Below, one piece after another: positions 1,469 through 60,733 of a stretch of DNA of 64,000 bases. The translations under genes were made by a program, and so were the position numbers. Under the pieces are notes generated by a model. The model made no database searches and was not told the origin of the DNA. It saw only the letters and a list, made by a program, of their open reading frames with translations. The stretch is from IMG/VR virus record IMGVR_UViG_3300033997_000478, positions 186,001 to 250,000 of that record; one strand, written 5' to 3'. How positions within the stretch are numbered: the first letter of the stretch is position 1; the number at the start of each line of letters is the position of its first letter.

Positions 1469-4929
<3,461 letters not shown>

Positions 4930-16024: not shown

Positions 16025-16585
16025 ATGGCGCGTGAAGAAAATGCGTTGATGTTTCGTCTGCAAGTGCGACTGAAATCGGACACTCCGGACTTTGTAATTC
16101 AGACGCTACGTCTGATGGTGGGGCAGCGTGCAGTGCAGCCGCCCAAGCACCCGCCCGAACATGCTTTTGGCCGTTTGCCGGGATGGTACAACCTGCTGCG
16201 TAATCTGAGCACGCGTACGCAGCGCTTTGCCTCCCACGAAACGGGCGGCAGTGGGAAGTTCAGCCAGTTGAAGTACACGTCGGGTTCATCCACCTTGCGT
16301 GAGTACAGTGGTTACTACGAACTCAAGGCAATTGGTGTCAGTAGTGCTGAAGAGCAGGATTTCGGTCTGTTCCTGGCATGGCTCTCGCCCTACTTGGTGC
16401 GTGCTGAGGGCGATCAGTGGTTGGCGCTGGTGCAAGCCTATGCCTTCTACACCCCGAAGGCAGGTCGTCGTAGGACCAAAGCAGGACTGATCAAGTTGTA
16501 TAGTCATCCGGTGAAAGGTGGTAGCTATCCGACCCTACATTACCGCGTTGGTCGTTTGCCGGATCTGGTCAAGCACATCTTGTGA
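16025..16585 (+). CDS. phage protein of unknown function (paralog of 8824..9453)
   Basis: LKSDTPDFVIQTLRLM motif; GGAG RBS. Confidence 0.7.
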   Translation: MAREENALMFRLQVRLKSDTPDFVIQTLRLMVGQRAVQPPKHPPEHAFGRLPGWYNLLRNLSTRTQRFASHETGGSGKFSQLKYTSGSSTLREYSGYYELKAIGVSSAEEQDFGLFLAWLSPYLVRAEGDQWLALVQAYAFYTPKAGRRRTKAGLIKLYSHPVKGGSYPTLHYRVGRLPDLVKHIL

Positions 16586-19177: not shown

Positions 19178-21943
19178 ATGGAAACTCTGGAAGACCGGAC
19201 CGCCTACAATGCAGCCATCGCCACCTCGCACGCTCAGCTCAAGGAGCTGATCGCCGCCCATGCGCATGTGCTGGTCATCTTCAGCCGCGTGACGTGCCCG
19301 CACTGCCGCACGCTGGAAGCTGTAATGGCTGAACCGGTGATCCAAGACGCCTTCGCTGCGCGCGATGTGAGCGTTGTCGAGATCAAGCTGGACAAGGTCG
19401 AGCCGGCCGTGGCCGTCGAATACGGTTTGCGTGCAGCGCCGACCCAGGTGTACTTCGTGGAAGGCAAGGAAGTGGCCCGTGCAACCGGCGCTACCGCCCT
19501 GACCGATCTGGTCGGCCTGATCGAAGCCAACTTCTCCAAGCCGGCTGCTGAAGAGAAGCCGCTTGTGGACATCAAGCCTGATGCGGTCCTTGAAAAGCAC
19601 CTGGTCAGCGAAGCACAGCCGCAGAAGGCTCCTGAAATGCGCGTGACCAAGCGCAACGGCAAGACCGAGCCGGTGGACCTGAACAAGATCCTGCGCGCCG
19701 TACAGCGCAGCGCAGAAGGCCTGAACGCCGTTGATCCGATGCGCGTGGCCACCCGTACCATCTCCGGCCTGTACGACGGCGCCACCACCCGTGAACTGGA
19801 CGAGCTGTCCATCCGCACCGCCGCCCTGCTGACCGGCGAAGACCCTGAGTATTCCAAGCTGGCTGCGCGCCTGCAGGCGAACTACATCGCCAAGGAAGTC
19901 ACCAACCAGCAGATCTACGCGTTCACCCAGTCCATCCAGCTGGGCTTCGATGTCGGCCTGATCAATGAGCGTCTGCTGAAGTTCGTGCAGGCCAATGCCC
20001 GCAAGCTCAACGACACCATCAACATCGAAAACGACAACAACTTCGAGTACTTCGGTCTGCGGACCATGTACGACCGCTACCTTCTGCGCCACCCGATCAC
20101 CCGCAAGGTCATCGAGACCCCGCAGCAGTTCTTCCTGCGTATCGCTTCGGCCCTGGCCACCGACGTCTCCGAAGCCCAGGCCCTGTACGAGCGCATGGCT
20201 GCGCTGGACTACCTGCCGTCCTCGCCGACCCTGTTCAACTCCGGCACCCGCCATGAGCAGATGTCCTCCTGCTTCCTGCTGGACTCCCCGCAGGACGACC
20301 TGGGCGCGATCTACGCCAAGTACGGCGACATCGCTCAGCTGAGCAAGTTCTCCGGCGGTATCGGCGTGGGCTTCACCCGCGTACGTGCTCGTGGTTCGCT
20401 GATCAAGTCCACCAACGGCCACTCCAACGGCATCGTGCCGTGGCTGAAGACCCTGGACTCCTCCGTGGCCGCCGTCAACCAGGGCGGCAAGCGCAAGGGC
20501 GCTGCTTGCGTCTATCTGGAAACCTGGCATGCCGACGTCGAGGACTTCCTCGAACTGCGTGACAACGTGGGCGATGAAGCCCGCCGTACCCACAACCTGA
20601 ACCTGGCCAACTGGATCCCCGACCTGTTCATGCAGCGCGTGGAAGCTGACCAGCAGTGGTCGCTGTTCGACCCGAACAAGGTCCCGCACTTCACCGACCT
20701 GTACGGTGACGACTTCACCGCCGCCTACGAGCAGGCCGAGCAGCAGGGCCTGTACGAACGCCAGATCTCCGCACGCAAGCTGTACGCGCGCATGATGCGC
20801 ACGCTGGCTGAGACCGGCAATGGCTGGATGAACTTCAAGGACAAGTGCAACAAGGCGTCCAACCAGACCGCCAAGGCCGGCAACGTCATCCACCTGTCCA
20901 ACCTGTGCACCGAGATCCTGGAAGTCACCGACAAGGACGAGACGGCCGTGTGCAACCTCGGCTCGATCAACCTGGGTCACCACGTGGTCAATGGCGAGTT
21001 CGACTTCGCCAAGCTGGGTGAGACCGTGCGTCTGGCCATCCGTCAGCTGGACCGGGTGATCGACCTGAACTTCTACCCGATCGAATCGGCCCGTCGTTCC
21101 AACAGCCGCTGGCGTCCGGTCGGTCTGGGTACGATGGGTCTGCAGGACGTGTTCTTCAAGAAGGGCTACGCCTTCGACTCCGAAGAAGCCCGCGCCCTGT
21201 CCAAGCAGATCGCCGAGACCATCTACTTCTACGCGCTGGAAGCTTCGTGCGAACTGGCTCAGCAGCTGGGCAAGCACGCCTCCTTCGCCGACACCCGTGC
21301 CGCCAAGGGCGAGCTGCAGTTCGACGCGTGGGGCGTGACCCCGAGCGATACCGCCAAGTGGGACGCTCTGCGTGAGCAGATCAAGCAGCACGGTCTGCGC
21401 AATTCGCTGATGATCGCCATCGCCCCCACTGCCACGATCGCCTCGATCGCCGGCTGCTACGAGTGCGTGGAACCGCAGGTGTCCAACCTGTTCAAGCGCG
21501 AGACCCTGTCTGGCGACTTCCTGCAGATCAACAAGTACCTGGTGGCTGACCTGAAGAAGGCCGGCCTGTGGAATGCTGGCGTGCGCGACGCCATCAAGCT
21601 GGCTGAAGGTTCGATCCAGGGCATCGAGGCCATTCCGGCCGCTCTGCGTCAGACCTATCGCACCGTGTGGGAACTGCCGATGCGTTCGCTGATCGACATG
21701 GCCGCCGATCGTGGTGCGTTCATCGACCAGTCCGCCTCGCTGAACCTGTTCATGGAAAGCCCGAACATCGGCGCGATGTCTTCCATGTACATGTACGCTT
21801 GGAAGAAGGGTATCAAGACCACCTACTACCTGCGTTCGCGCCCGGCGACCAAGATCGCCAAGACCACCGTGTCGGCCTACAGCCCGACCGATGCCGTGGC
21901 CTGCTCGCTGGAAAACCCGGAAACTTGCGAAGCCTGCACCTGA
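19178..21943 (+). CDS. nrdA: class Ia ribonucleotide reductase alpha subunit with N-terminal thioredoxin-like domain and ATP cone
   Basis: Thioredoxin CPHC; ATP cone VTKRNG; PTLFNSG, SSCF, GGIG, SNLCTEI, CNLGS, IAPTATI, KTTYYLR, C-terminal CEAC. Confidence 0.97.
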   Translation: METLEDRTAYNAAIATSHAQLKELIAAHAHVLVIFSRVTCPHCRTLEAVMAEPVIQDAFAARDVSVVEIKLDKVEPAVAVEYGLRAAPTQVYFVEGKEVARATGATALTDLVGLIEANFSKPAAEEKPLVDIKPDAVLEKHLVSEAQPQKAPEMRVTKRNGKTEPVDLNKILRAVQRSAEGLNAVDPMRVATRTISGLYDGATTRELDELSIRTAALLTGEDPEYSKLAARLQANYIAKEVTNQQIYAFTQSIQLGFDVGLINERLLKFVQANARKLNDTINIENDNNFEYFGLRTMYDRYLLRHPITRKVIETPQQFFLRIASALATDVSEAQALYERMAALDYLPSSPTLFNSGTRHEQMSSCFLLDSPQDDLGAIYAKYGDIAQLSKFSGGIGVGFTRVRARGSLIKSTNGHSNGIVPWLKTLDSSVAAVNQGGKRKGAACVYLETWHADVEDFLELRDNVGDEARRTHNLNLANWIPDLFMQRVEADQQWSLFDPNKVPHFTDLYGDDFTAAYEQAEQQGLYERQISARKLYARMMRTLAETGNGWMNFKDKCNKASNQTAKAGNVIHLSNLCTEILEVTDKDETAVCNLGSINLGHHVVNGEFDFAKLGETVRLAIRQLDRVIDLNFYPIESARRSNSRWRPVGLGTMGLQDVFFKKGYAFDSEEARALSKQIAETIYFYALEASCELAQQLGKHASFADTRAAKGELQFDAWGVTPSDTAKWDALREQIKQHGLRNSLMIAIAPTATIASIAGCYECVEPQVSNLFKRETLSGDFLQINKYLVADLKKAGLWNAGVRDAIKLAEGSIQGIEAIPAALRQTYRTVWELPMRSLIDMAADRGAFIDQSASLNLFMESPNIGAMSSMYMYAWKKGIKTTYYLRSRPATKIAKTTVSAYSPTDAVACSLENPETCEACT

Positions 21944-21946
21944 TCC

Positions 21947-22474
21947 ATGGAACTGTATCAGCACCCGGTCTTTCCGGGTGTTCAGGCCACGCGATCCGGT
22001 GAGGTCTTCTCGCACGGCAAGCATCTGAGGGGAAGCAACATCAAGTACCCTCAGGTGTTTGTCCGCGATGCGGGTAAGCTCCAAACCAAGCATCGTCTTG
22101 TCTACGAGTGCGTCACCGGTGAGCCATTACCGGAATACGAACGCAAGGGCAACGGGCTTGAACTCAACCACAAAGACGGCGACACCCGCAATGCCGCCTT
22201 CGACAACCTTGAGCTGATCACCCATGGCGAGAATATGCGCCATTCATGGCAGACGCTTGGCAAACGCCAAGCTCTTGCTCCCGGTGTGCTCAACGCCAGT
22301 GCCAAACTGACGGTCCATGACATCCATGTGATCTTCATCGACTGGTACTACGGCGCCACCTATGCGGAACTCGGGCGACGGTTCGGTGTGCATGAAAGTG
22401 CCATCAGTCGAATCATCTCCGGAGAGCAATACCAACGCGAATCCCAGCAGATCCGGGAAGAGCTCGGACTGTAG
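21947..22474 (+). mobile_element. free-standing HNH homing endonuclease with C-terminal HTH
   Basis: HRLVY..ELNHKDGDTRNAAFDNLELITHGENMRH, then AKLT..DI..ELGRRFGVHESAISRI. Confidence 0.85.
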
Positions 22475-22535: not shown

Positions 22536-24530
22536 ATGACGAAGAAAATGTTGCTCGACCCCGGTTTCGAACTGACGCTGCGCCCGATGCGCTACCCGCA
22601 GTTCTACGACATGTACCGCGACGCGATCAAGAACACCTGGACGGTTGATGAAATCAACTTCCAGCTGGACATCAGCGACCTGCATGACAAGATGACGCCG
22701 GCCGATCGACACCTGATCCACCGCCTGGTTGCGTTCTTCGCCACCGGCGACAGCATCGTCTCCAACAACCTGGTGCTCAACCTGTACCAGCACCTGAACT
22801 CACCTGAAGCGCGCATGTACCTGTCGCGCCAGCTGTACGAAGAAGCCCTGCACGTGCAGTTCTACCTGACCCTGCTGGACAACTACCTGCCGGATCCGGA
22901 ACAGCGCAATGCCGCCTTTGCTGCGGTCGAGAACATCCCCTCGATCAAGAAGAAGGCCGACTTCTGCTTCAAGTGGATCGACTCGATCCAGGACCTGCAC
23001 AAGCTGGAAACCCGCGAACACCGCCGGCAGTTCCTGCTCAACCAGATCTGCTTTGCCGCGATCATCGAAGGCCTGTTCTTCTTCGCTGCCTTCGCCTACG
23101 TGTACTACTTCCGTTCGCGCGGTCTGCTCTCCGGCCTGGCCAGCGGCACCAACTGGGTGTTCCGCGACGAAAGCTGTATGCCTGTGGACTCCACGGAGAT
23201 TTTGACCGATAAGGGCTTTGTGGGCCTGCGTGAGGTCATTGCGCGGGGCGAGGCGGGCGATAGCTTCAACGTTGCCCAGTACGCCGCTGACGGCACTGTG
23301 AGCTTTGTGGAACCGCGCGGTTATGTACTCAAGCCTTTCAACGGTGAGCTGATCCACTGCCGCACTGAGAAGAGTGTGTCGCTACTGACCACCGATGACC
23401 ATGACAACGTGACGCGCTCCAAAACCACCGGTGCACTGCGCAAGACTAAAGCGATGGACATGTCGCTTTCTTCGACGTCGGAAATGGTCTGCGCCGGCTT
23501 CGGCATGGGTCCTGCGGCTACGTTGACTGACATCGAACGCTTTGCTATCGTTTACCAGGCCGATGGCGTTGAGCGCGTCAATGGTAATGGTGAGCGCAGC
23601 GGTACTGTTGGCGTTAAGTTTGGCTTTGCCAAGGAACGCAAGATCCAGCGCTTTGAAGCGCTGTTGGATCGCCTGCGGTGGGATTACTCCAAGGTCATCA
23701 GCTCTCGTGAAAACGAGCGTAACGACCAGGTTGTGTACCGCGTTAAGATGCCTGCCTCGCTGATGGCAATCATCGACAAGGACTTCTCCTGGGTGACTAT
23801 GGATCGGATCCATAGCAACTGGGCGCGTGAGTTCATCGAAGAGGTCTCCCATTGGGACAGTTATCTGGCTGAAGACCGCACCTGCGTGCAGTACATCAAT
23901 ACCAACGAGGACGCGGTTAACAAGGTACAGGCGGTGGCCGCTCTGGCCGGGTATGCCACCAACCTCTACCGCAAGACCGACGGCCGTAGCGACAGCTACA
24001 ACGACGTGTACAACCTGTTTATCAAGCATCGCGATTACGCTGACCTGCATAATGCGGAATTGGTCACCGTACCGTTCACCGGGGATGTCGGTTGTGTGAA
24101 CGTACCCACCGGAATGATCATCGTTCGTCAGGACGGTAAGGTTCACGTTACCGGGAACTGCCACATGAACTTCGCCTTCGAGTCGGTGCGCGTGATCCGT
24201 GAAGAAGAGCCGGACCTGTTCGACGCCGAGATGGAAGCGCAGGTGTACCAGATGCTGGAAGAAGGCATCGAGTGCGAGCTGCAGTTCGCTGAAGACGTCC
24301 TCTCCGGCGGCGTGGCTGGCATCTCCACCAACGACATGCGCCAGTACCTGCAGCACTGCGCCGACAACCACTTCCTGCGCCTGGGCATGAAGAAGAAGTA
24401 CAACGTCTCCAACCCGCTGCCGTTCATGGAGCTGCAGGACGTCCAGGAACTGACCAACTTCTTCGAGCGCCGCGTCTCGGCCTACCAGGTCGGCGTGCAA
24501 GGCGAAGTTGCCTTCGACATGAACTTCTAA
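22536..24530 (+). CDS. nrdB: class Ia ribonucleotide reductase beta subunit, intein-containing
   Basis: FFATGD, YEEALHVQFY, IEGLFF, RDES/CH, NFFE; 328-aa in-frame insertion. Confidence 0.97.
   Translation: MTKKMLLDPGFELTLRPMRYPQFYDMYRDAIKNTWTVDEINFQLDISDLHDKMTPADRHLIHRLVAFFATGDSIVSNNLVLNLYQHLNSPEARMYLSRQLYEEALHVQFYLTLLDNYLPDPEQRNAAFAAVENIPSIKKKADFCFKWIDSIQDLHKLETREHRRQFLLNQICFAAIIEGLFFFAAFAYVYYFRSRGLLSGLASGTNWVFRDESCMPVDSTEILTDKGFVGLREVIARGEAGDSFNVAQYAADGTVSFVEPRGYVLKPFNGELIHCRTEKSVSLLTTDDHDNVTRSKTTGALRKTKAMDMSLSSTSEMVCAGFGMGPAATLTDIERFAIVYQADGVERVNGNGERSGTVGVKFGFAKERKIQRFEALLDRLRWDYSKVISSRENERNDQVVYRVKMPASLMAIIDKDFSWVTMDRIHSNWAREFIEEVSHWDSYLAEDRTCVQYINTNEDAVNKVQAVAALAGYATNLYRKTDGRSDSYNDVYNLFIKHRDYADLHNAELVTVPFTGDVGCVNVPTGMIIVRQDGKVHVTGNCHMNFAFESVRVIREEEPDLFDAEMEAQVYQMLEEGIECELQFAEDVLSGGVAGISTNDMRQYLQHCADNHFLRLGMKKKYNVSNPLPFMELQDVQELTNFFERRVSAYQVGVQGEVAFDMNF
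23175..24158 (+). mobile_element. intein in NrdB, probably with a degenerate LAGLIDADG-type endonuclease
   Basis: Starts CMPVDSTEILTDKG, ends VGCVNVPTG..VRQDGKVHVTGN followed by +1 Cys; removal restores RDES-CHMNF. Confidence 0.93.
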
Positions 24531-24929: not shown

Positions 24930-25211
24930 TCACTCTTGCTGCTTGCCGCCGAAGACAGACTTGAACAGGGCAAAGCGTTCGGCGATGGCCTTCTGATCGA
25001 CCAGGCGGCTGACGGCACCGAGGAAGCCAACCCACTGCACCAGGCGCTCGAAGATCAGCGGCAGATGACCAGCACTGATCAGCTTGTACTGTACGGCCAG
25101 TGCGTAGAGTTCCGGAGAGAAGCCGATGATGAAGAAGGCCCACATCGAGAACCACTTCCAGGCCCGCTTCCAGTCGTTGACCAGATACTTGTTGAAGAAC
25201 TCGGCAATCAT
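24930..25211 (-). CDS. putative holin-like membrane protein
   Basis: MIAEFFNKYLVNDWKRAWKWFSMWAF..; LV.DW..AWKW.SM pattern of small phage holin-like proteins, two hydrophobic segments. Confidence 0.65.
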   Translation of the reverse strand: MIAEFFNKYLVNDWKRAWKWFSMWAFFIIGFSPELYALAVQYKLISAGHLPLIFERLVQWVGFLGAVSRLVDQKAIAERFALFKSVFGGKQQE

Positions 25212-25334
25212 TGTAAAGCTCCAGCGGATGATGCTCTCCATAGGATGCTGTGAATAAAAACAGCCGTGTTTGATGGTGTGGCTCAAAGGCCAGAGCGCTG
25301 CGCATTCTGCGCGCCCAAACACAGAGAAAAAGAA

Positions 25335-25958
25335 ATGAGTGACGCAACCATCGTGAAACCGAGTTACCAGCTGGGCACCCCGGTCATCCCGATCGATCAG
25401 GGCCAGGGAATTTTCCTGGAGCACTTCCAGCTTCCCAAGCAGTATCTGGCAGTGGACGGTAAGCTGCTGCCGGTTGCCGTGCTGAAGTTCGACACCGCCT
25501 ACGACCTGATCGGCGTCAGTCAGGACCACACCCTGCTCCACGGCGGTCACATCGACTTTACCGACTCGTTGGACGAGGAGGTCTCGATCGACGCGCTGTA
25601 TTATCGAGACGAGTTCTCCAAGGATGCCGAGTGGAAGATCATCGACGTCACTGCTTTCTCTGAGCGCTTCTGCTTTGACAAGTTCCCCGTCGAAGGCAAC
25701 AGCCGTGTGCGCGGCCTGCAGGAATACATCGTCCTGCCGATTACCATCGACGGCGAAGAACATCGCGTCAAGTACGCCATCGCTGGCGAATTGAATGTGG
25801 AGTTCGGCAGCGTCAAGGTCTGGTGGAGCATCAACGAAATCCTCACTGCTCCCTCCGGCCAGCAGAAGGAACTGCGTGCCAAGATCTTCAATCTCAACCC
25901 CCTGCGCGGTTTCAAGGTCGGCGCCTACCGCGCCAACGCCAACCGCGCTACACGCTGA
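25335..25958 (+). CDS. stand-alone homolog of an internal major capsid protein domain
   Basis: Collinear matches to MCP residues about 279-463 (see findings). Confidence 0.85.
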   Translation: MSDATIVKPSYQLGTPVIPIDQGQGIFLEHFQLPKQYLAVDGKLLPVAVLKFDTAYDLIGVSQDHTLLHGGHIDFTDSLDEEVSIDALYYRDEFSKDAEWKIIDVTAFSERFCFDKFPVEGNSRVRGLQEYIVLPITIDGEEHRVKYAIAGELNVEFGSVKVWWSINEILTAPSGQQKELRAKIFNLNPLRGFKVGAYRANANRATR

Positions 25959-25967
25959 GGGCCAACC

Positions 25968-26714
25968 ATGTCCGATGTAATGAAGATCCAGACCGTGGCT
26001 TTTGACGGCGACCAGACGGAAGTCGTTGAAGAGCACGTCATTCCCAATGACACCCGACACACCCAGCTACTGACCTTCGAAAACGGCCCAACCGAAGAGC
26101 CGGCCAATGATGCTGTTCTGATCAACGGCCGTGTCATCGCTCTGGGTTACTTCGAACTGGATAAGACCTACGATCTGTTGAACTCTTCAGATCACCCATA
26201 TCTGCGAGAACAGGGTCTCATCCATGCCAATGACAGCATCGACGGACATATCACGGTTGAAGGTCTGCTGGTACGCGGTATCTGGGCTGATGACGGTCAT
26301 GTGATCCAGGGTCCCACCTACGTTCGACTGGATGTGTTTGGTAAGGAATACGCCTACGACCAGCATACCGACTACGCCACCATCGACGCGGTGAACATCC
26401 AGATCGAATTGCCGATTGGCGTGCCCGGCCATGGAGGTGTCCAGTTCAAGCTGTGGCTGCAAGGTGAGCTGTCACGTCGCAAGGGTACGGTGAATCTGGA
26501 AGTGGTTCGCTGCGAAGCCATCGGTCGCTGGGAGGGCTCTGAACTGATCCGTCACCCGGAGAGGTGGGCGACGAATGTTGAAAGTGCCGACCTGTTCGAA
26601 AAGTGGTTCCGGGAGTACCAACCCATCGAAGGTTATCGGGTCAAGACTACCCGTACCTACAGCGCCAACTTTATGGCCTTCCTCGCCCAACGTGAAGCTA
26701 AGCGCCAAGCATAA
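25968..26714 (+). CDS. second, more diverged homolog of the MCP internal domain
   Basis: ELDKTYDLL..GLIHANDSID, QGELSRRKGTV, IEGYRVKTTRTYSAN align with 25335..25958 and the MCP. Confidence 0.7.
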   Translation: MSDVMKIQTVAFDGDQTEVVEEHVIPNDTRHTQLLTFENGPTEEPANDAVLINGRVIALGYFELDKTYDLLNSSDHPYLREQGLIHANDSIDGHITVEGLLVRGIWADDGHVIQGPTYVRLDVFGKEYAYDQHTDYATIDAVNIQIELPIGVPGHGGVQFKLWLQGELSRRKGTVNLEVVRCEAIGRWEGSELIRHPERWATNVESADLFEKWFREYQPIEGYRVKTTRTYSANFMAFLAQREAKRQA

Positions 26715-26746
26715 TAGAGCCCCGCCTTCGGGCGGGGTTTTATGCC
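26709..26746 (+). terminator. intrinsic terminator-like hairpin
   Basis: GCATAA..CCCCGCC-TTCG-GGCGGGG-TTTTATGCC. Confidence 0.75.
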
Positions 26747-56031: not shown

Positions 56032-57624
56032 TTACAGGGGCAAACCAGCAGTGACGCCACCGGGTGCATGCCACGGAATCTCCTCACCACTACCCATCGG
56101 ACCGCCGCCGGGTGCTTTGAGGGAGATGTCCGCCTTGCCGTAGTCATCGCGGATGTCGGCAATGGGACTGAACGGCAGCACGGTGTAGCGATGACGAATC
56201 GGAGTATCGCGCGGCTTACGGTGCTTACCACGCTGGATCGTCAGGAACGACTCTTGGTTAATGACTTCCTTGTGGATGAAGATCTCCAGATCCACCTCTT
56301 GGTCAATCGTACCGCAGGAGTCGTAGTAACCCTTGCCTTCCAGATGCTTGACGAAGTCGTTGACGCCCAGGCGGGTCATCTTCTTCGCTTCAGTGGACAG
56401 CTGGGCCGGGGTGATGAAGGTGATACCGCGCGGAGCAGTGAAGTTACGAACACGACGGAACAGGTCACGGATTTCCGAACCGGTCGGACCGCCCTGGATG
56501 CAGCCTCGCTTGGAGATCATGTTCAGGTAGTCAAAGACGATGGCGTGGATTTCATAGCCCTGCGACTCCAGCGCCGTGATCATGTCAAAGATGCGCTCGT
56601 AGGTCATCTCCGACGGATCGCAACGGCCCATCATCACGTTGTAGCCATTGACCGACATCTTCTCGTAGATGTATGCCTTGGCCTCGTCGATGGCCGCCTG
56701 CTTGATCAGCGGGTCCGGATCGGAGAACATGGCCGTCGGTGCCAGCTGGCCGGTCTCGTTCTCGTACAGGTAGCGGTACAGCTGCACGATGTTCAGCTGC
56801 AGCTCGTTCTCAGCCGAGATATGCAACAGCAACGGCTTCTTGGTCGGGTCACGCATGTACGGGGTGTTGTACAGGGCGATCTGACGGAACAGGTGCAGGG
56901 TGAAGCCGGTCTTGAAGTTGTGCTGCAGTGCGCCGATCAGGACGAACTCACCACGACGCAGGCCTTGGTGTTCGCCGAGCATGCGATTGATCGCCTGCCA
57001 GCCCAGACGCAGAACACCTTCCAACGAGGTTTCCTCACCGGCCCGGTTGATCAGGCGGGAGATGTTGTCACCGTCAGACAGATCGACCATGTCAATCATG
57101 CCGCCGATCTTGAACTCTTCGGAGGTGTTGTTGCGGTACGGGTCGAGCTTTTCGTGGACTTCACTGATCAGGCTGGACCAGTTGACCTTCTCCGGATTGA
57201 AGTTGGCCTTATAGGAGAACTCTTTGAGGATCTCCTTGATCTTGGTCTGATTGACGTAGTCGCGCAGCTCCATGCGCTGGGCCATGCAGCGCTTTTTCAG
57301 GACGATCAGGTCGGTGGTGTCACCGATACCCTGCTCGAACCCGTAGTACAAACCTTCTTCATCCGAAGAATTGACACGTATTCTTTGAAGAACAATCGTA
57401 CGATCCAGCTCTTCGCCGGGAGCGCGTTCTGCCATCCACTCCACGGTACGTTTGAGATTCAGCAAGATCTCACGGGATCGATCGAAGTCGACGCCGGGCT
57501 CGCCGAACTTGATGGTCTCCAGCACTTCCTGCACGAGGTTGACCGAATGGATCGTCGGATCTTTCAGTTGGCCCTCGTTGAACAACAGTGTTGCTAGTTT
57601 GACCAGAAGCAGCTTGGGGTCCAT
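56032..57624 (-). CDS. DnaB-like (SF4) replicative helicase, phiKZ gp118-like
   Basis: LRRGEFVLIGALQHNFKTG variant Walker A, HISAEN, IVFDYL Walker B, TPAQLS, RGKHR; divergent from the capsid operon. Confidence 0.85.
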   Translation of the reverse strand: MDPKLLLVKLATLLFNEGQLKDPTIHSVNLVQEVLETIKFGEPGVDFDRSREILLNLKRTVEWMAERAPGEELDRTIVLQRIRVNSSDEEGLYYGFEQGIGDTTDLIVLKKRCMAQRMELRDYVNQTKIKEILKEFSYKANFNPEKVNWSSLISEVHEKLDPYRNNTSEEFKIGGMIDMVDLSDGDNISRLINRAGEETSLEGVLRLGWQAINRMLGEHQGLRRGEFVLIGALQHNFKTGFTLHLFRQIALYNTPYMRDPTKKPLLLHISAENELQLNIVQLYRYLYENETGQLAPTAMFSDPDPLIKQAAIDEAKAYIYEKMSVNGYNVMMGRCDPSEMTYERIFDMITALESQGYEIHAIVFDYLNMISKRGCIQGGPTGSEIRDLFRRVRNFTAPRGITFITPAQLSTEAKKMTRLGVNDFVKHLEGKGYYDSCGTIDQEVDLEIFIHKEVINQESFLTIQRGKHRKPRDTPIRHRYTVLPFSPIADIRDDYGKADISLKAPGGGPMGSGEEIPWHAPGGVTAGLPL

Positions 57625-57655
57625 TTCTAATTATCCAACCTTAAAGGTTTTTCTG

Positions 57656-58189
57656 ATGAAGATCGTCTATGTTCCGCAACACATCTACGGCGCGCTGAAG
57701 CAGGCGGGTCTGGCTTCGCGCGACCTGTGCGATGTTGGGAAGCTCTTGGGCACACTATCGGCGGAAGATGTAGCTTTTTATTTCTACGCCAACACGCCGG
57801 GAAAAAGCTGCCCCATTCCCAAGCCGCTGAGCGACTACCTGCCGAACCTGTTCTTCCACACCGACAACGGCGCTGCGCCCTTTGACAGCAGCGACCCGAT
57901 GCAGGCGCAAGCTATGCGTATGTGGAACTCGTTCGTAAAGAACGGCTCCGCTGCATCACTGTATGAGAAAAATTCGGTTCTCACTTCGGACTGCTCCGAA
58001 GAGGACCTGCTCATCCTCACCCACGTAGCACAGCCCGACGCTGCGGACGGTGAGAAGCCGAAGTTCGATGAAACGGCATTCTATGACCGGGTCATCCAGC
58101 AACTGCTGGCTTTCCAAAGCCCCGAGCAAGTCATGGCCTCTCCGGTCCTGACCGCTTGGCTGAAGTCGGTGCGGCCCTCTGCTGCGTAA
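57656..58189 (+). CDS. hypothetical protein between helicase and MCP
   Basis: ATG at 57656; position in the core gene block. Confidence 0.65.
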   Translation: MKIVYVPQHIYGALKQAGLASRDLCDVGKLLGTLSAEDVAFYFYANTPGKSCPIPKPLSDYLPNLFFHTDNGAAPFDSSDPMQAQAMRMWNSFVKNGSAASLYEKNSVLTSDCSEEDLLILTHVAQPDAADGEKPKFDETAFYDRVIQQLLAFQSPEQVMASPVLTAWLKSVRPSAA

Positions 58190-58462: not shown

Positions 58463-60733
58463 ATGTCCTCTCTGAAGCTCAAGGGTCGGAACCAGGCCCC
58501 GCTGACCAAGCTGGCCCACACCCTGAAGGCGAACATCGCCACCCAGGGCGCTGACTTCGTCTCCGCCGGCCAGACCAACACCCTCATCTCGATGGAAGGC
58601 TTCTCCGATGCGCAGGCTGCCAGCCTGCAGAGCACCTTCGACCAGGTCCGCAGCGACATCCGCGACGAACTGAAGAAGTTCAAGCTGGGCGCCGGCTTCG
58701 GCTTCGAAGCCCTTGCCGACGGCTGCGAAGATCCGGAAGCCATCCGTCAGCTCGACACCGCGCTGGACGCCGGCGCCATGGCCGCCATGGCTGCGGGCAA
58801 CCCGGTTGCCTACGCACAGCAGGCCTACAACGGCCAGCCGGTTGCCACCGGCGAGAACGTCACCCTGGTCGACACCATGGCCCTGCAGGGCGGTGCCAAC
58901 TCGATGGACTACCGCGCCAACGTGGCGATGGAAGCCTTCAACGAGCAGGAACTGCGTGATCACCTGCCGTACTCGATCCTGTTCAACGTCTTCGCCTCGC
59001 GCCAGGACGACTTCAGCGAAATGCTGTTCCCGACCACCGTCGTGCCGCCGGATCAAGCCGGTCTGGACATCACCGTGGCCCGCATGCAGGTCTTCAACGA
59101 AGTCCGTCACCAGGCCTCCGGCGCCAAGATCGACTTCGGCAAGCGCAACCTGATCGACGCCGCCATCGACCACACCATCCTGGCCGATGAGCACACCCGC
59201 CTGGTCCCGGTCGTCCTGGAAGACGGCAGCAACGCCGACAAGTTCGTCGACGAAGCCGTGGTTCCGACCTTCTTCCAGCGCGTGGGCAACTTCGACGTGC
59301 CGACCTCGGCGCTGAAGCTGGATGAAACCATCGACCTGCTGGGCATCTCGCAGTGGCAGCCGCTGCTGGGCGCTGGCGTGATCGACCACTCCGACGACGT
59401 CGACGCTCGCGTCGTGCTGTCCGAGCTGTACCTGCAGTCGGCCGACGGCGCCGTTGCTGTCAAGTTCCCGGTCGAGCGTCTGGCTCGCAACCAGTTCAAC
59501 AAGACCACCGAAGGCAACAGCCGCCTGACCGGTCTGCAGTTCACCTCCACCGACCTGGTCATCGACAAGAACTCGAAGGCCCTCGACGGCACCGACGTCG
59601 CCGCGTTCGCCGGCATCGTCACCGGTGAGTACACCGTGCGCCTGTCGGTCAACGTGTCGGGTGAGCTGAACCACGAGTTCGGCAACATCAAGGTCTGGGC
59701 CTCGAAGGTCTCGGTCGCCTCGATCCAGGACAAGAACGGCAATGCCATTCCGACCTCGGCCGGTGCCGGCAAGGCCGTCGCTGATGCCCTGAAGCCGCTG
59801 TCCATCATCGGCTACACCATCCGCGCCAACCGTACCAACGCCAACAAGCGTACCCGTGGCCACCTGCTGGACACCGTGTACGAAACCCAGCGCTACACCA
59901 TCCCGCTGGGCAGCCCGCTGTCGATCACCTCCCCGGTGAGCCATGGCGATGCCCGCGACGCCGCTGACCAGAAGACCCTGATCGCTGCCGCTCGTATGCG
60001 CAACAGCAACAACGCGGTCACCGCGCTGTTCGCCATTGCCGACCAGCTGCGCGAAGTCACCAAGGGTCCGAAGCTGCCGGCCGGTGAGTACTGCGGCGTG
60101 GGCGGCCTGGGCCGCTTCCTGGTCGATCCGTTCTTCGAAGAGCACACCGTCGACCTGGTGCAGTGCCTGAACAGCATCAAGTCGCAGGACCGTGCGCTGG
60201 ACATCAGCTCGGTGCTGGTCAACGTGCTGCGTGACATCGCCTACCGCATGTACCGCGACACCAAGATCCAGCCGGCGATCGACGCCCAGACCGGTACCAC
60301 CGGCGAAGCTCCGATCCTGCTGGTCGGTACCGACCAGGTGCTGATCCGTCACCTGCTGATCAACGGCGACAGCCGCACCTTCGGCACCGTGTTCGACAAG
60401 GCCGTCGTCAAGGCCTCGCTGGACCGCCGCATGTACGGCAAGATCGTCCTGACCCTGACCCGCGCCAACGCGGAAGGTCCGGATCCGCTGACCTTCGGTA
60501 CCCACGCCTGGATGTCGGAACTGATCGCCACCATGCCGATCAGCCGCAACGGCGCCACCACCAAGGAAGCGACCGTTCAGCCGCGTACCCTGCACATCAA
60601 CAACATGCCGGTCCTGGCCATCGTGTCGGTGAAGGGTCTGTCGAAGGTCCTGGTCGACAAGACCAGCACCCCGGCGATCGCTGCTGCCGTCACCAACGTG
60701 TACCTGGACGGCCTGAAGTACCCGACCCTGTAA
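58463..60733 (+). CDS. major capsid protein (phiKZ gp120-like)
   Basis: 756 aa; extreme codon bias; FEALAD, MEAFNE, RQDDFSEMLFPT.VV.PD, RGHLLD..IPLGSP, HINNMP motifs typical of phiKZ-like MCPs; synteny. Confidence 0.85.
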   Translation: MSSLKLKGRNQAPLTKLAHTLKANIATQGADFVSAGQTNTLISMEGFSDAQAASLQSTFDQVRSDIRDELKKFKLGAGFGFEALADGCEDPEAIRQLDTALDAGAMAAMAAGNPVAYAQQAYNGQPVATGENVTLVDTMALQGGANSMDYRANVAMEAFNEQELRDHLPYSILFNVFASRQDDFSEMLFPTTVVPPDQAGLDITVARMQVFNEVRHQASGAKIDFGKRNLIDAAIDHTILADEHTRLVPVVLEDGSNADKFVDEAVVPTFFQRVGNFDVPTSALKLDETIDLLGISQWQPLLGAGVIDHSDDVDARVVLSELYLQSADGAVAVKFPVERLARNQFNKTTEGNSRLTGLQFTSTDLVIDKNSKALDGTDVAAFAGIVTGEYTVRLSVNVSGELNHEFGNIKVWASKVSVASIQDKNGNAIPTSAGAGKAVADALKPLSIIGYTIRANRTNANKRTRGHLLDTVYETQRYTIPLGSPLSITSPVSHGDARDAADQKTLIAAARMRNSNNAVTALFAIADQLREVTKGPKLPAGEYCGVGGLGRFLVDPFFEEHTVDLVQCLNSIKSQDRALDISSVLVNVLRDIAYRMYRDTKIQPAIDAQTGTTGEAPILLVGTDQVLIRHLLINGDSRTFGTVFDKAVVKASLDRRMYGKIVLTLTRANAEGPDPLTFGTHAWMSELIATMPISRNGATTKEATVQPRTLHINNMPVLAIVSVKGLSKVLVDKTSTPAIAAAVTNVYLDGLKYPTL

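Follow-up and report, generated by a model that had tools for sequence, protein, structure and literature searches.

Two intact open reading frames downstream of a conserved leader

The window analysed here is a stretch of 64,000 nucleotides (positions 186,001 to 250,000 of the IMG/VR record IMGVR_UViG_3300033997_000478). It carries two co-oriented and probably co-transcribed genes, each of which encodes only the insertion (I) domain of a phiKZ-type major capsid protein (MCP). ORF A (25335..25958, plus strand) encodes 207 residues. ORF B (25968..26714, plus strand) encodes 248 residues and starts 9 nt after the stop codon of A. The MCP of the same phage has 756 residues, is encoded at 58463..60733, and matches the Pfam family PhiKZ_MCP (E 4e-215). 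Its I domain comprises residues 236-465 (59168..59857, plus strand) and represents the parent-type domain of A and B. A six-frame profile scan of the window finds exactly three copies of the I domain: A, B, and the MCP. The distance from A to the MCP gene is about 32.5 kb.

A 93-nt leader or promoter region (25242..25334, plus strand) separates A from a divergent DUF7940 gene. The leader is almost identical in an alignment of the window with three relatives (L003, L005, and L007), although the A proteins are only 71-91% identical. It contains an AT-loop hairpin followed by TTTGATGGTGTG and is foldable (consensus energy -27.8 kcal/mol), but the fold shows no covariation. Downstream of B, a GC-rich hairpin followed by TTTTATG (26716..26745, plus strand) closes the A-B unit. 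It looks like a terminator, although a terminator scan reported this same hairpin only on the minus strand (26737..26720), and it resembles the hairpin+TATG units at many intergenic sites of the window. An Rfam scan of the locus gives only a sub-threshold isrJ hit on this terminator.

Promoter motifs are uninformative as to the timing of expression. No sigma-70-like site is found, the TATAATAC-type motif is rare, and the hairpin+TATG motif is almost universal in this genome. The ATGGTGTG motif shared by the regions upstream of A and the MCP gene is not enriched (4 found against 2.7 expected). A crude GC-frame gene caller picked a 376-residue antisense ORF (24930..26060) instead of A. However, only its 3' third is a real gene (DUF7940), whereas the A frame carries the homology and the selection signal. 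The neighbouring genes give no functional clue.

A and B are homologous to the I domain of the MCP

The preliminary description had aligned A with MCP residues of about 279-463 and regarded B as a more diverged copy, and this observation is confirmed. The four segment pairs it compared are exact: A positions 50, 120, 151, and 192 correspond to MCP positions 284, 350, 400, and 450, with 15/31, 8/10, 10/13, and 6/12 identities. By BLASTP, A aligns with a slightly wider segment, MCP residues 236-465 (29% identity over 237 columns, E 1e-18). The Smith-Waterman score is 176 against 35 +/- 5 for shuffled sequences (z = 28.5). In accordance, A matches Pfam PhiKZ_MCP (PF25620) at 35.1 bits, above the 27-bit cut-off. 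B is weak against the MCP alone (BLASTP E 0.005; z = 5.8; about 26% identity over the aligned 104 residues). B is nevertheless homologous, as A against B gives E 2e-8, a profile of 83 full-length MCPs hits B at E 9e-7, and a profile of the stand-alone family hits B at E 1e-42.

In phiKZ, the I domain extends the E-loop and comprises residues 248-472 of gp120 (PMC11297242). The family profile maps to residues 239-473 of gp120 in PDB 8y6v, so the domain boundaries coincide with those of the structural domain. A and B align only to the I-domain segment of the MCP profile, and nothing aligns before position ~216 or after position ~446. The N-arm, P domain, and A domain are therefore missing, and neither protein can form an HK97-type shell, as the preliminary description had proposed.

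AlphaFold2 predicts both folds with confidence (A, pLDDT 87.4 and pTM 0.83; B, pLDDT 78 and pTM 0.75). B has an N-terminal β-hairpin extension and a C-terminal helix. Below E 1e-3, Foldseek searches of the PDB with these models return only the jumbo-phage MCP structures 8bfl and 8y6v, at E 1e-10 and 4.5e-9 for A (TMq 0.63-0.65) and at E 1.7e-7 and 4e-5 for B. It should be noted that the alignments used for prediction included MCP I domains, which biases the models towards this fold.

Both genes are under purifying selection

Orthologues of A are 71-100% identical and share a conserved ATG start. The ORFs are intact in five lineages, and dN/dS is 0.17-0.45 for A and 0.09-0.43 for B. The preliminary description had named decay, with dN/dS near 1, as a condition that would refute it, and the genes are not decaying. 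A functionless relic of a partial MCP gene duplication might be expected from partial copies located far from the structural gene. This reading is very improbable and effectively refuted by the selection and conservation data, the precise boundaries shared by dozens of clusters, the confidently predicted folds, and the absence of DNA-level similarity to the MCP gene. We also rejected a silent cassette for gene conversion of the MCP I domain, since only collinear matches of 24-31 nt at conserved motifs, and no extended DNA homology, are found.

B is absent from the relatives L003 and L004, where A is followed directly by the terminator; in L003, this is the same hairpin as described above. The cluster of A occurs on a 278.6-kb contig and that of B on a 327-kb contig. 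In another relative (L009), an ORF of 176 residues is inserted before A; it has no significant similarity to A, B, or the MCP. In a tree of I domains, the A clade groups with WJJ55076.1 of Xanthomonas phage RTH11 and with the relative P0103 (support 90/83). These occupy the same position downstream of the ribonucleotide reductase (RNR) genes, indicating synteny with RTH11 across deep divergence, which also speaks against a functionless relic. Stand-alone copies sit on long branches and evolve faster than MCP I domains. GC3 is 0.79 for A and 0.64 for B, against 0.89 for the MCP, so the codon bias of both genes is well below that of the MCP.

A family of stand-alone, tandem, and fused I-domain proteins

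A profile search of 1.84 billion representative proteins gave 131 hits. They include 83 full-length MCPs, about 29 single stand-alone proteins (clusters at 50% identity) with identical domain boundaries (MCP-profile positions of about 224-446), and 3 tandem forms. Five further proteins (P0031, P0042, P0062, P0123, and P0128) carry an additional domain of roughly 125 residues, at either end of the protein, whose profile hits Tad1 crystal structures at E 6e-17 and phiKZ gp184 at E 2.5e-20. Another relative, P0139, is a fusion of a Tad2-like domain (PF11195, E 3e-12) with an I domain and is encoded next to a chimallin gene. In addition, an Acb2/Tad1-hairpin gene lies 4 kb from a tandem I-domain gene. 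Neither a Tad1-like nor a Tad2-like domain is present in A, in B, or anywhere in the window. A word-indexed profile search returned only close relatives and added little.

A tblastn search of 50,697 phage records with A, B, the MCP I domain, P0103, and P0052 (another relative) hit only MCP genes apart from RTH11, which made the family look absent from cultured phages. A fold search and profile checks, however, show diverged members. Gp106 of phage 201phi2-1 matches the family profile at E 7e-19 and lies between chimallin and an nvRNAP subunit. It carries no mass-spectrometry flag in a record that flags virion proteins, although this is negative evidence taken from an annotation. PhiPA3 gp326 is a weaker candidate (Foldseek TMq 0.42; HMM E 3e-4 over 55 residues). 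It is annotated as similar to phiKZ gp266, which tolerates transposon insertions (3334 reads at 24 sites, against 13 reads for chimallin), indicating that this weak phiKZ relative is non-essential. The preliminary description did not foresee a large family with tandem and fused forms and members in cultured chimalliviruses.

PHROG phrog_36436, a 229-position profile of unknown function, matches the MCP I domain (E 6e-5) and 41 of 71 family or I-domain sequences, although A itself scores only E 0.02. It is probably an already-clustered subset of this family, without a recognised link to the MCP; a 229-residue I-domain-like protein of Ralstonia phage RP12, returned by the fold search, has a matching length. 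We found no prior description of the family, and about 30 clusters of hypothetical proteins thereby gain a structural identity. Whether the MCP I domain arose by capture of a free-standing gene also becomes testable.

Possible roles of the free I domain

The analysis establishes that A and B are old I-domain paralogues without an HK97 core, not recent copies of the MCP gene of this phage, that they are under purifying selection, and that they belong to a large family in jumbo phages. Their function, including any binding to a sensor or to the MCP, is inferred only. The preliminary description listed decoys of capsid sensors, assembly modulators, blockers of related phages, and decoration proteins without choosing among them. 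Its interpretation is partly supported: the domain identity, the inability to build shells, and the maintenance of the genes hold, whereas none of the four functions is shown and only the defence-related one gains circumstantial support.

Our preferred reading, which is tentative, is that A and B are non-virion accessory proteins that would present a soluble copy of the most exposed MCP surface, one that cannot assemble into capsomers. They would act in the conflict with host systems that sense capsid proteins, such as Thoeris ThsB and CBASS cyclases, and could occupy the sensor, or the MCP surface it reads, without the oligomerisation that triggers it. In the fused relatives, sensor blocking and signal sequestration would then be combined in one protein. 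A and B may work as a pair, as I domains dimerise in capsids and some relatives carry two I domains in one chain. This reading is consistent with the fusions to Tad1-like and Tad2-like sponge domains, with the early or metabolic-type neighbours of family members, such as RNR and chimallin, with the variable copy number and the absence of B from L003 and L004, with the missing virion flag of 201phi2-1 gp106, with the codon bias below that of the MCP, and with the non-essential phiKZ gp266. It is also consistent with reports that Thoeris ThsB1/B2 bind MCPs (PMC12578639), that MCP triggers share a need for oligomerisation (PMC13728456), and that phiKZ gp184 is Tad1. However, there is no direct evidence of an interaction with a host sensor, and no Tad-like domain lies in this window. 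The low identity to the MCP I domain means that mimicry would have to be at the level of fold, not epitope, and a protein that binds a sensor could activate it rather than block it.

The Tad1 fusions also fit a capsid-associated role, in which the free I domain docks onto the MCP lattice as a minor capsid or cement protein and, in the fusions, would be the anchor that carries Tad1 or Tad2 cargo into virions, as the N-terminus of phiKZ gp184 does. In phiKZ capsids, I domains dimerise at quasi-two-fold axes and sit on neighbouring subunits (PMC11297242), either of which could provide a docking site. PhiKZ gp184 is itself a minor capsid protein, with its N-terminus wedged in the shell and its C-terminus released and injected. 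Four of the five Tad1 fusions share this order, with the I domain at the N-terminus, and the domain boundaries are strictly conserved. On the other hand, every canonical I-domain site in a complete T=27 lattice is already filled by the MCP itself, and cargo attached to the outer surface, where the I domain lies, would not be injected. P0128 and P0139 have the reverse order. Furthermore, no non-MCP chain of any solved structure, including the capsid entries 8y6v, 8bfl, 36za, and 11bt, matches the I-domain profile. The genes lie among RNR and chimallin-type neighbours rather than head genes, the codon bias is below that of the MCP, and 201phi2-1 gp106 lacks a virion flag. A decoration or anchor role is therefore weakened and appears unlikely, but is not excluded. 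Prohead-protease motifs (S/A/G-x-E), inspected by eye in the linkers of the Tad1 fusions, are too short and not conserved and were not used as evidence.

An assembly modulator or chaperone is less likely still. A natural binding partner exists, because the I domain packs on the A/P junction and the I-domain linker of the adjacent subunit. A free I domain bound to this seat on unassembled MCP would delay or steer capsomer formation and might hide the MCP from sensors until procapsids form. The missing virion flag of 201phi2-1 gp106 is compatible with this. However, a core assembly factor should be conserved and important for fitness, whereas the family is patchy and variable in copy number, B is dispensable in close relatives, and the weak phiKZ relative is non-essential. 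The sponge fusions are not explained by this reading. Inter-phage competition, in which the free I domains poison the capsid assembly of co-infecting related jumbo phages as dominant-negative subunits while having diverged enough to spare the MCP of their own phage, is quite improbable. It is compatible with the fast evolution and accessory character of the stand-alone copies, and interference competition between co-infecting chimalliviruses is documented (PMC11620839). But there is no specific evidence for it, and the repeated fusion to anti-host sponge domains points to host immunity rather than to rival phages.

Several bacterial defences, including Thoeris, CBASS, CapRel, and Lit, are triggered by major capsid proteins, and no phage countermeasure built from a capsid-protein fragment is known. 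The family consists of the exposed MCP insertion domain alone and has been joined repeatedly to two unrelated anti-Thoeris/CBASS sponge families. If the mimic idea is right, it gives a directly testable handle on how jumbo-phage capsids are sensed and how that sensing is evaded. In its boldest form, which we consider doubtful but which the data do not rule out, stand-alone I-domain proteins would be capsid-surface mimics deployed by jumbo phages as monomers that engage sensors, or shield the MCP surface, without triggering them, and the fusions would be two-function anti-defence proteins. This would be the first family of phage counter-defence proteins derived from the very structural protein that the host senses. 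If the capsid-anchor idea is right instead, the family shows a second route, besides the gp184 N-terminus, for loading sponge cargo onto virions.

Comparison with known systems

A and B resemble the I domain of phiKZ-type MCPs in sequence, predicted fold, and boundaries, including the VP(I/V)Y...FVD and GY.L.A.R.N.NRR motifs. They differ from it in being free-standing polypeptides without the N-arm, linkers, P domain, and A domain, in evolving faster, and in being encoded away from the head genes. Full-length MCP paralogues used as special capsomers, such as T4 gp24 against gp23, are likewise duplicates of a capsid-protein gene retained for a separate role. However, they keep the whole HK97 fold and are built into the shell, whereas A and B keep only the insertion domain and cannot form capsomers.

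PhiKZ gp184 is a capsid-borne, injected Tad1 sponge for Thoeris/CBASS signals, and relatives of A and B are fused to a domain homologous to it. Both cases link capsid-derived or capsid-bound parts with sponge cargo. A and B carry no such domain, and the N-terminal region of gp184 is not I-domain-like, since the I-domain profile does not hit chain I of 8y6v. The mode of action proposed for A and B, inferred by analogy and without demonstrated binding, is that of phage inhibitors that bind the sensor of a structural-protein-triggered defence, i.e., Tad3-7, which inhibit ThsB by direct binding (PMC13728456), and DSAD1 on DSR2 (PMC11087589). These would share with A and B the occupation of the sensor or competition with the structural trigger, but none of them is derived from the structural protein that is sensed.

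Two free-standing copies of a capsid-protein domain

The window is part of a phiKZ-like jumbo phage. Its closest cultured relatives are Xanthomonas phages LucasX and RTH11, whose major capsid protein (MCP) I-domain segments are 75% and 66% identical to that of the window. The MCP (756 aa) is encoded at 58463..60733 (Pfam PhiKZ_MCP, E 4e-215). The ORF directly upstream (57452..58189, + strand) gives a weak hit to PhiKZ_gp119, the vertex-binding protein, from residue 69 (E 0.004), consistent with the phiKZ gp119-gp120 gene order, and its true start is probably the internal Met.

ORF A (25335..25958, 207 aa) and ORF B (25968..26714, 248 aa) are real open reading frames. ORF A aligns with MCP residues 236-465 at 29% identity (BLASTP E 1e-18), its Smith-Waterman score lies 28.5 sd above shuffles, and it passes the Pfam cut-off for PhiKZ_MCP. 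ORF B is weak against the MCP alone (E 0.005; z 5.8), but is clearly related to ORF A (E 2e-8) and to a profile of 83 full-length MCPs (E 9e-7). A six-frame profile scan finds just three copies of this domain in the window: ORF A, ORF B, and the MCP. The preliminary description had reported two stand-alone copies of an internal MCP domain, and this observation held; the four pairs of aligned segments on which it rested are exact. Its interpretation is supported in part.

The phiKZ capsid structure divides gp120 into an N-arm, I-domain linkers, an I (insertion) domain at residues 248-472, and P and A domains (PMC11297242). The I domain is described there as an extension of the HK97 E-loop that sits on a neighbouring subunit and forms I-I dimers at quasi-two-fold axes. 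The MCP of Goslar is built the same way. A profile of ORFs A and B, their relatives, and MCP segments maps to gp120 residues 239-473 of PDB 8y6v, and in the whole PDB hits only four MCP sequences at significance. The AlphaFold2 models are confident (pLDDT 87.4 and pTM 0.83 for A; pLDDT 78 and pTM 0.75 for B), and below E 1e-3 they match only phiKp24 and phiKZ MCP chains, although MCP I domains were included in the input alignments. Therefore, A and B are free-standing I domains. Lacking the HK97 core, they cannot form capsomers.

Conservation and organization of the locus

Six orthologue clusters of ORF A, 71-100% identical, exist in metagenomes. Five loci share the order RNR-small / 113 aa / DUF7940 (minus strand) / A / (B) / 232 aa. 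All ORFs are intact, and the ATG at 25335 is the conserved start. Pairwise dN/dS is 0.17-0.45 for A and 0.09-0.43 for B, at or below the values of the flanking 232-aa gene, indicating that these are maintained genes and not relics. ORF B is missing from the closest relative (loci L003/L004), in which the same terminator hairpin follows A directly; B is thus accessory to A. A further relative (L009) has an extra 176-aa ORF (1616..2146 of that locus) inserted between the DUF7940 gene and ORF A, which has no significant similarity to A, B, or the MCP. There is no DNA-level homology between these genes and the MCP gene, so the locus is not a recombination cassette.

ORFs A and B are 9 nt apart with no terminator between them, and a GC hairpin followed by TTTTATG comes after B. 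They are probably one transcription unit. A GC-rich hairpin followed immediately by T(T)TATG(C/T) recurs at many intergenic sites of the window, for example at 26720..26745 and upstream of the genes at 16025, 17029, 17883, 31380, 37151, 39003, 41620, 43892, and 60919. It looks like a terminator fused to a phiKZ-type "TATG" promoter start, and the same unit precedes the I-domain genes of RTH11 and of locus L011.

The 93-nt leader before ORF A (25242..25334) is almost invariant in relatives whose A proteins have diverged to 71-91% identity and whose coding regions have diverged to a dS of 0.25-0.7. It can form a long-range GTGTTTG/CAAACAC stem enclosing two hairpins, but the alignment shows no covariation to test the fold, and no Rfam family matches. 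The gene transcribed divergently from ORF A (24930..25241, minus strand) encodes a DUF7940, holin-like (phrog_1356) small membrane protein that is conserved in all relatives and in RTH11.

The RNR small-subunit gene (22536..24530, + strand; 664 aa) carries an insertion of about 330 aa that splits the Ribonuc_red_sm match in two. The orthologue in the relatives L005/L006 is 336 aa, and that in L003 is also 664 aa. The boundaries of the insertion (...FRDES|CMPVDS... and ...VHVTGN|CHMNF...) look intein-like, but no Pfam intein or Hint domain reached E 0.01. In the adjoining segment (19178..22474, + strand), the RNR large subunit has an N-terminal thioredoxin plus ATP-cone fusion (921 aa), and an HNH endonuclease gene (21947..22474) is wedged between the large- and small-subunit genes.

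A large family of I-domain proteins

To determine how widespread such proteins are, we searched a profile of A and B orthologues against 1.84 billion representative proteins and sorted the 131 hits at E <= 1e-3 with a full-MCP profile. They comprise 83 full-length MCPs, 6-7 MCP fragments, about 29 single-domain proteins of 177-245 aa, 3 proteins with two I domains in tandem (representatives P0009, P0017, and P0083), and 7 proteins with an I domain plus an extra region (apart from P0007, P0008, P0103, and P0080, which are counted as single-domain). The single-domain proteins start with Met at the VP(I/V)Y...FVD motif and end just after GY.L.A.R.N.NRR.

One single-domain protein is WJJ55076.1 of RTH11 (OQ790161.1, 142133..142750). 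Its annotated start (179 aa) is too far downstream; the real ORF begins at the in-frame ATG at 142133 and gives a protein of about 205 aa that matches P0103 from residue 1. The gene lies in the order RNR-alpha / RNR-beta / 122 aa / I-domain, and a 315-kb contig shows the same order. This arrangement is syntenic with ORF A. The A clade groups with these two proteins in a maximum-likelihood tree (support 90/83). ORF B forms a separate long-branched clade, and no stand-alone copy groups with the MCP of its own phage. A single origin is neither shown nor excluded by this tree.

Sequence searches of 50,697 phage records found no other stand-alone copies. However, a fold search of predicted viral structures did find them, in 201phi2-1 (B3FIW9, 188 aa), Ralstonia phage RP12 (229 aa), Phabio (315 aa), PhiEaH1 (246 aa), pEt-SU (two proteins), FBKp24 (two weaker matches, E 1.3e-3 and 9.3e-3, above the 1e-3 mark), and PhiPA3 (gp326, 146 aa). 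The only 188-aa gene found near chimallin in 201phi2-1 is gp106, which we therefore take to be B3FIW9. It matches the family profile at E 7e-19 over its full length.

Fusions, neighbourhood, and virion status

Several members of the family are fused to sponge domains. P0139 carries a Tad2-like domain (PF11195, E 3e-12) in front of its I domain. P0031, P0042, P0062, and P0123 (C-terminal) and P0128 (N-terminal) share a domain of roughly 125 aa (phrog_2428), the profile of which hits Tad1 crystal structures at E 6e-17 and phiKZ gp184 residues 123-227 at E 2.5e-20. The precomputed Pfam annotation of P0031 is Acb2_Tad1_hairpin. A weak Acb2/Tad1-hairpin gene also lies 4 kb from the tandem I-domain gene P0009. 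Gp184 is the Tad1 of phiKZ, a non-essential minor capsid protein whose C-terminus is released by the head protease and injected. The capsid-structure paper describes gp184 (PDB 8y6v chain I) only as a beta-rich vertex-complex protein and does not mention Tad1; the shared profile hits are in line with the later TnSeq preprint that calls gp184 Tad1.

The I-domain genes sit beside RNR genes (the window, RTH11, and L011) or beside chimallin and nvRNAP genes, and not among head genes. In two distant lineages the I-domain gene lies next to the gene of chimallin, the nuclear shell protein. In locus L012 (7001..10271), the Tad2-I-domain fusion P0139 is two genes upstream of chimallin, and in 201phi2-1 (locus L019, 7607..10294; gp105-gp106-gp107), gp106 is immediately downstream of chimallin gp105. 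The 201phi2-1 record marks proteins identified by virion mass spectrometry, and gp106 is not marked. GC3 is 0.89 for the MCP, the highest of 63 genes, but 0.79 for A and 0.64 for B.

In addition to the absence of ORF B from close relatives, a possible phiKZ relative appears dispensable. The PhiPA3 record annotates gp326 as similar to phiKZ gp266, and the gp266 gene carries 24 transposon insertion sites and 3334 reads, whereas essential chimallin has 13 reads. This link is weak, as the Foldseek TMq is 0.42 and the profile match (E 3e-4) covers only the N-terminal motif.

Possible roles of the free I domain

The structural identity of A and B is secure, whereas the mechanism, including any engagement of host immunity, is inferred. 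Published work shows that Thoeris ThsB1/B2 bind MCPs to start signalling (PMC12578639), that MCP triggers from unrelated phages share a need to oligomerise and that capsid or scaffold mutations escape CBASS (PMC13728456), and that Tad3-7 inhibit ThsB by direct binding. We tentatively favour, at less than even confidence, a non-virion accessory role in which the free I domain mimics the exposed MCP surface in the contest with capsid-sensing immunity. Such a role fits the recurrent fusion, in both orientations, to two unrelated sponge families that counter the very systems known to sense capsids, as well as the patchy, variable-copy, and fast-evolving behaviour of the family, the early or metabolic-type neighbourhoods, and the negative virion evidence. 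The tandem forms, together with the I-I dimer seen in capsids, suggest that A and B may pair.

The main rival, which we consider unlikely, is that the I domain is a capsid-docking module. Gp184/Tad1 sets a precedent for capsid-borne sponge cargo, and 4 of the 5 Tad1 fusions share its N-to-C order. However, all lattice seats are already occupied, the I domain faces outward, two fusions are reversed, and gp106 lacks a mass-spectrometry flag. Assembly modulation is possible but less likely still, and interference with co-infecting phages even less so; neither explains the sponge fusions. Decay is effectively excluded.

None of the capsid or review papers examined mentions free I-domain proteins, and we did not find the free-standing family, its tandem forms, or its sponge fusions described in the literature searched. 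PHROGs holds part of the family as an unannotated cluster, phrog_36436. The domain itself is known from phiKZ-type MCPs, and the proteins described here differ from it in being free-standing, in tandem, or fused to sponge domains; the family would be categorically new if the capsid-mimic mechanism proves true.
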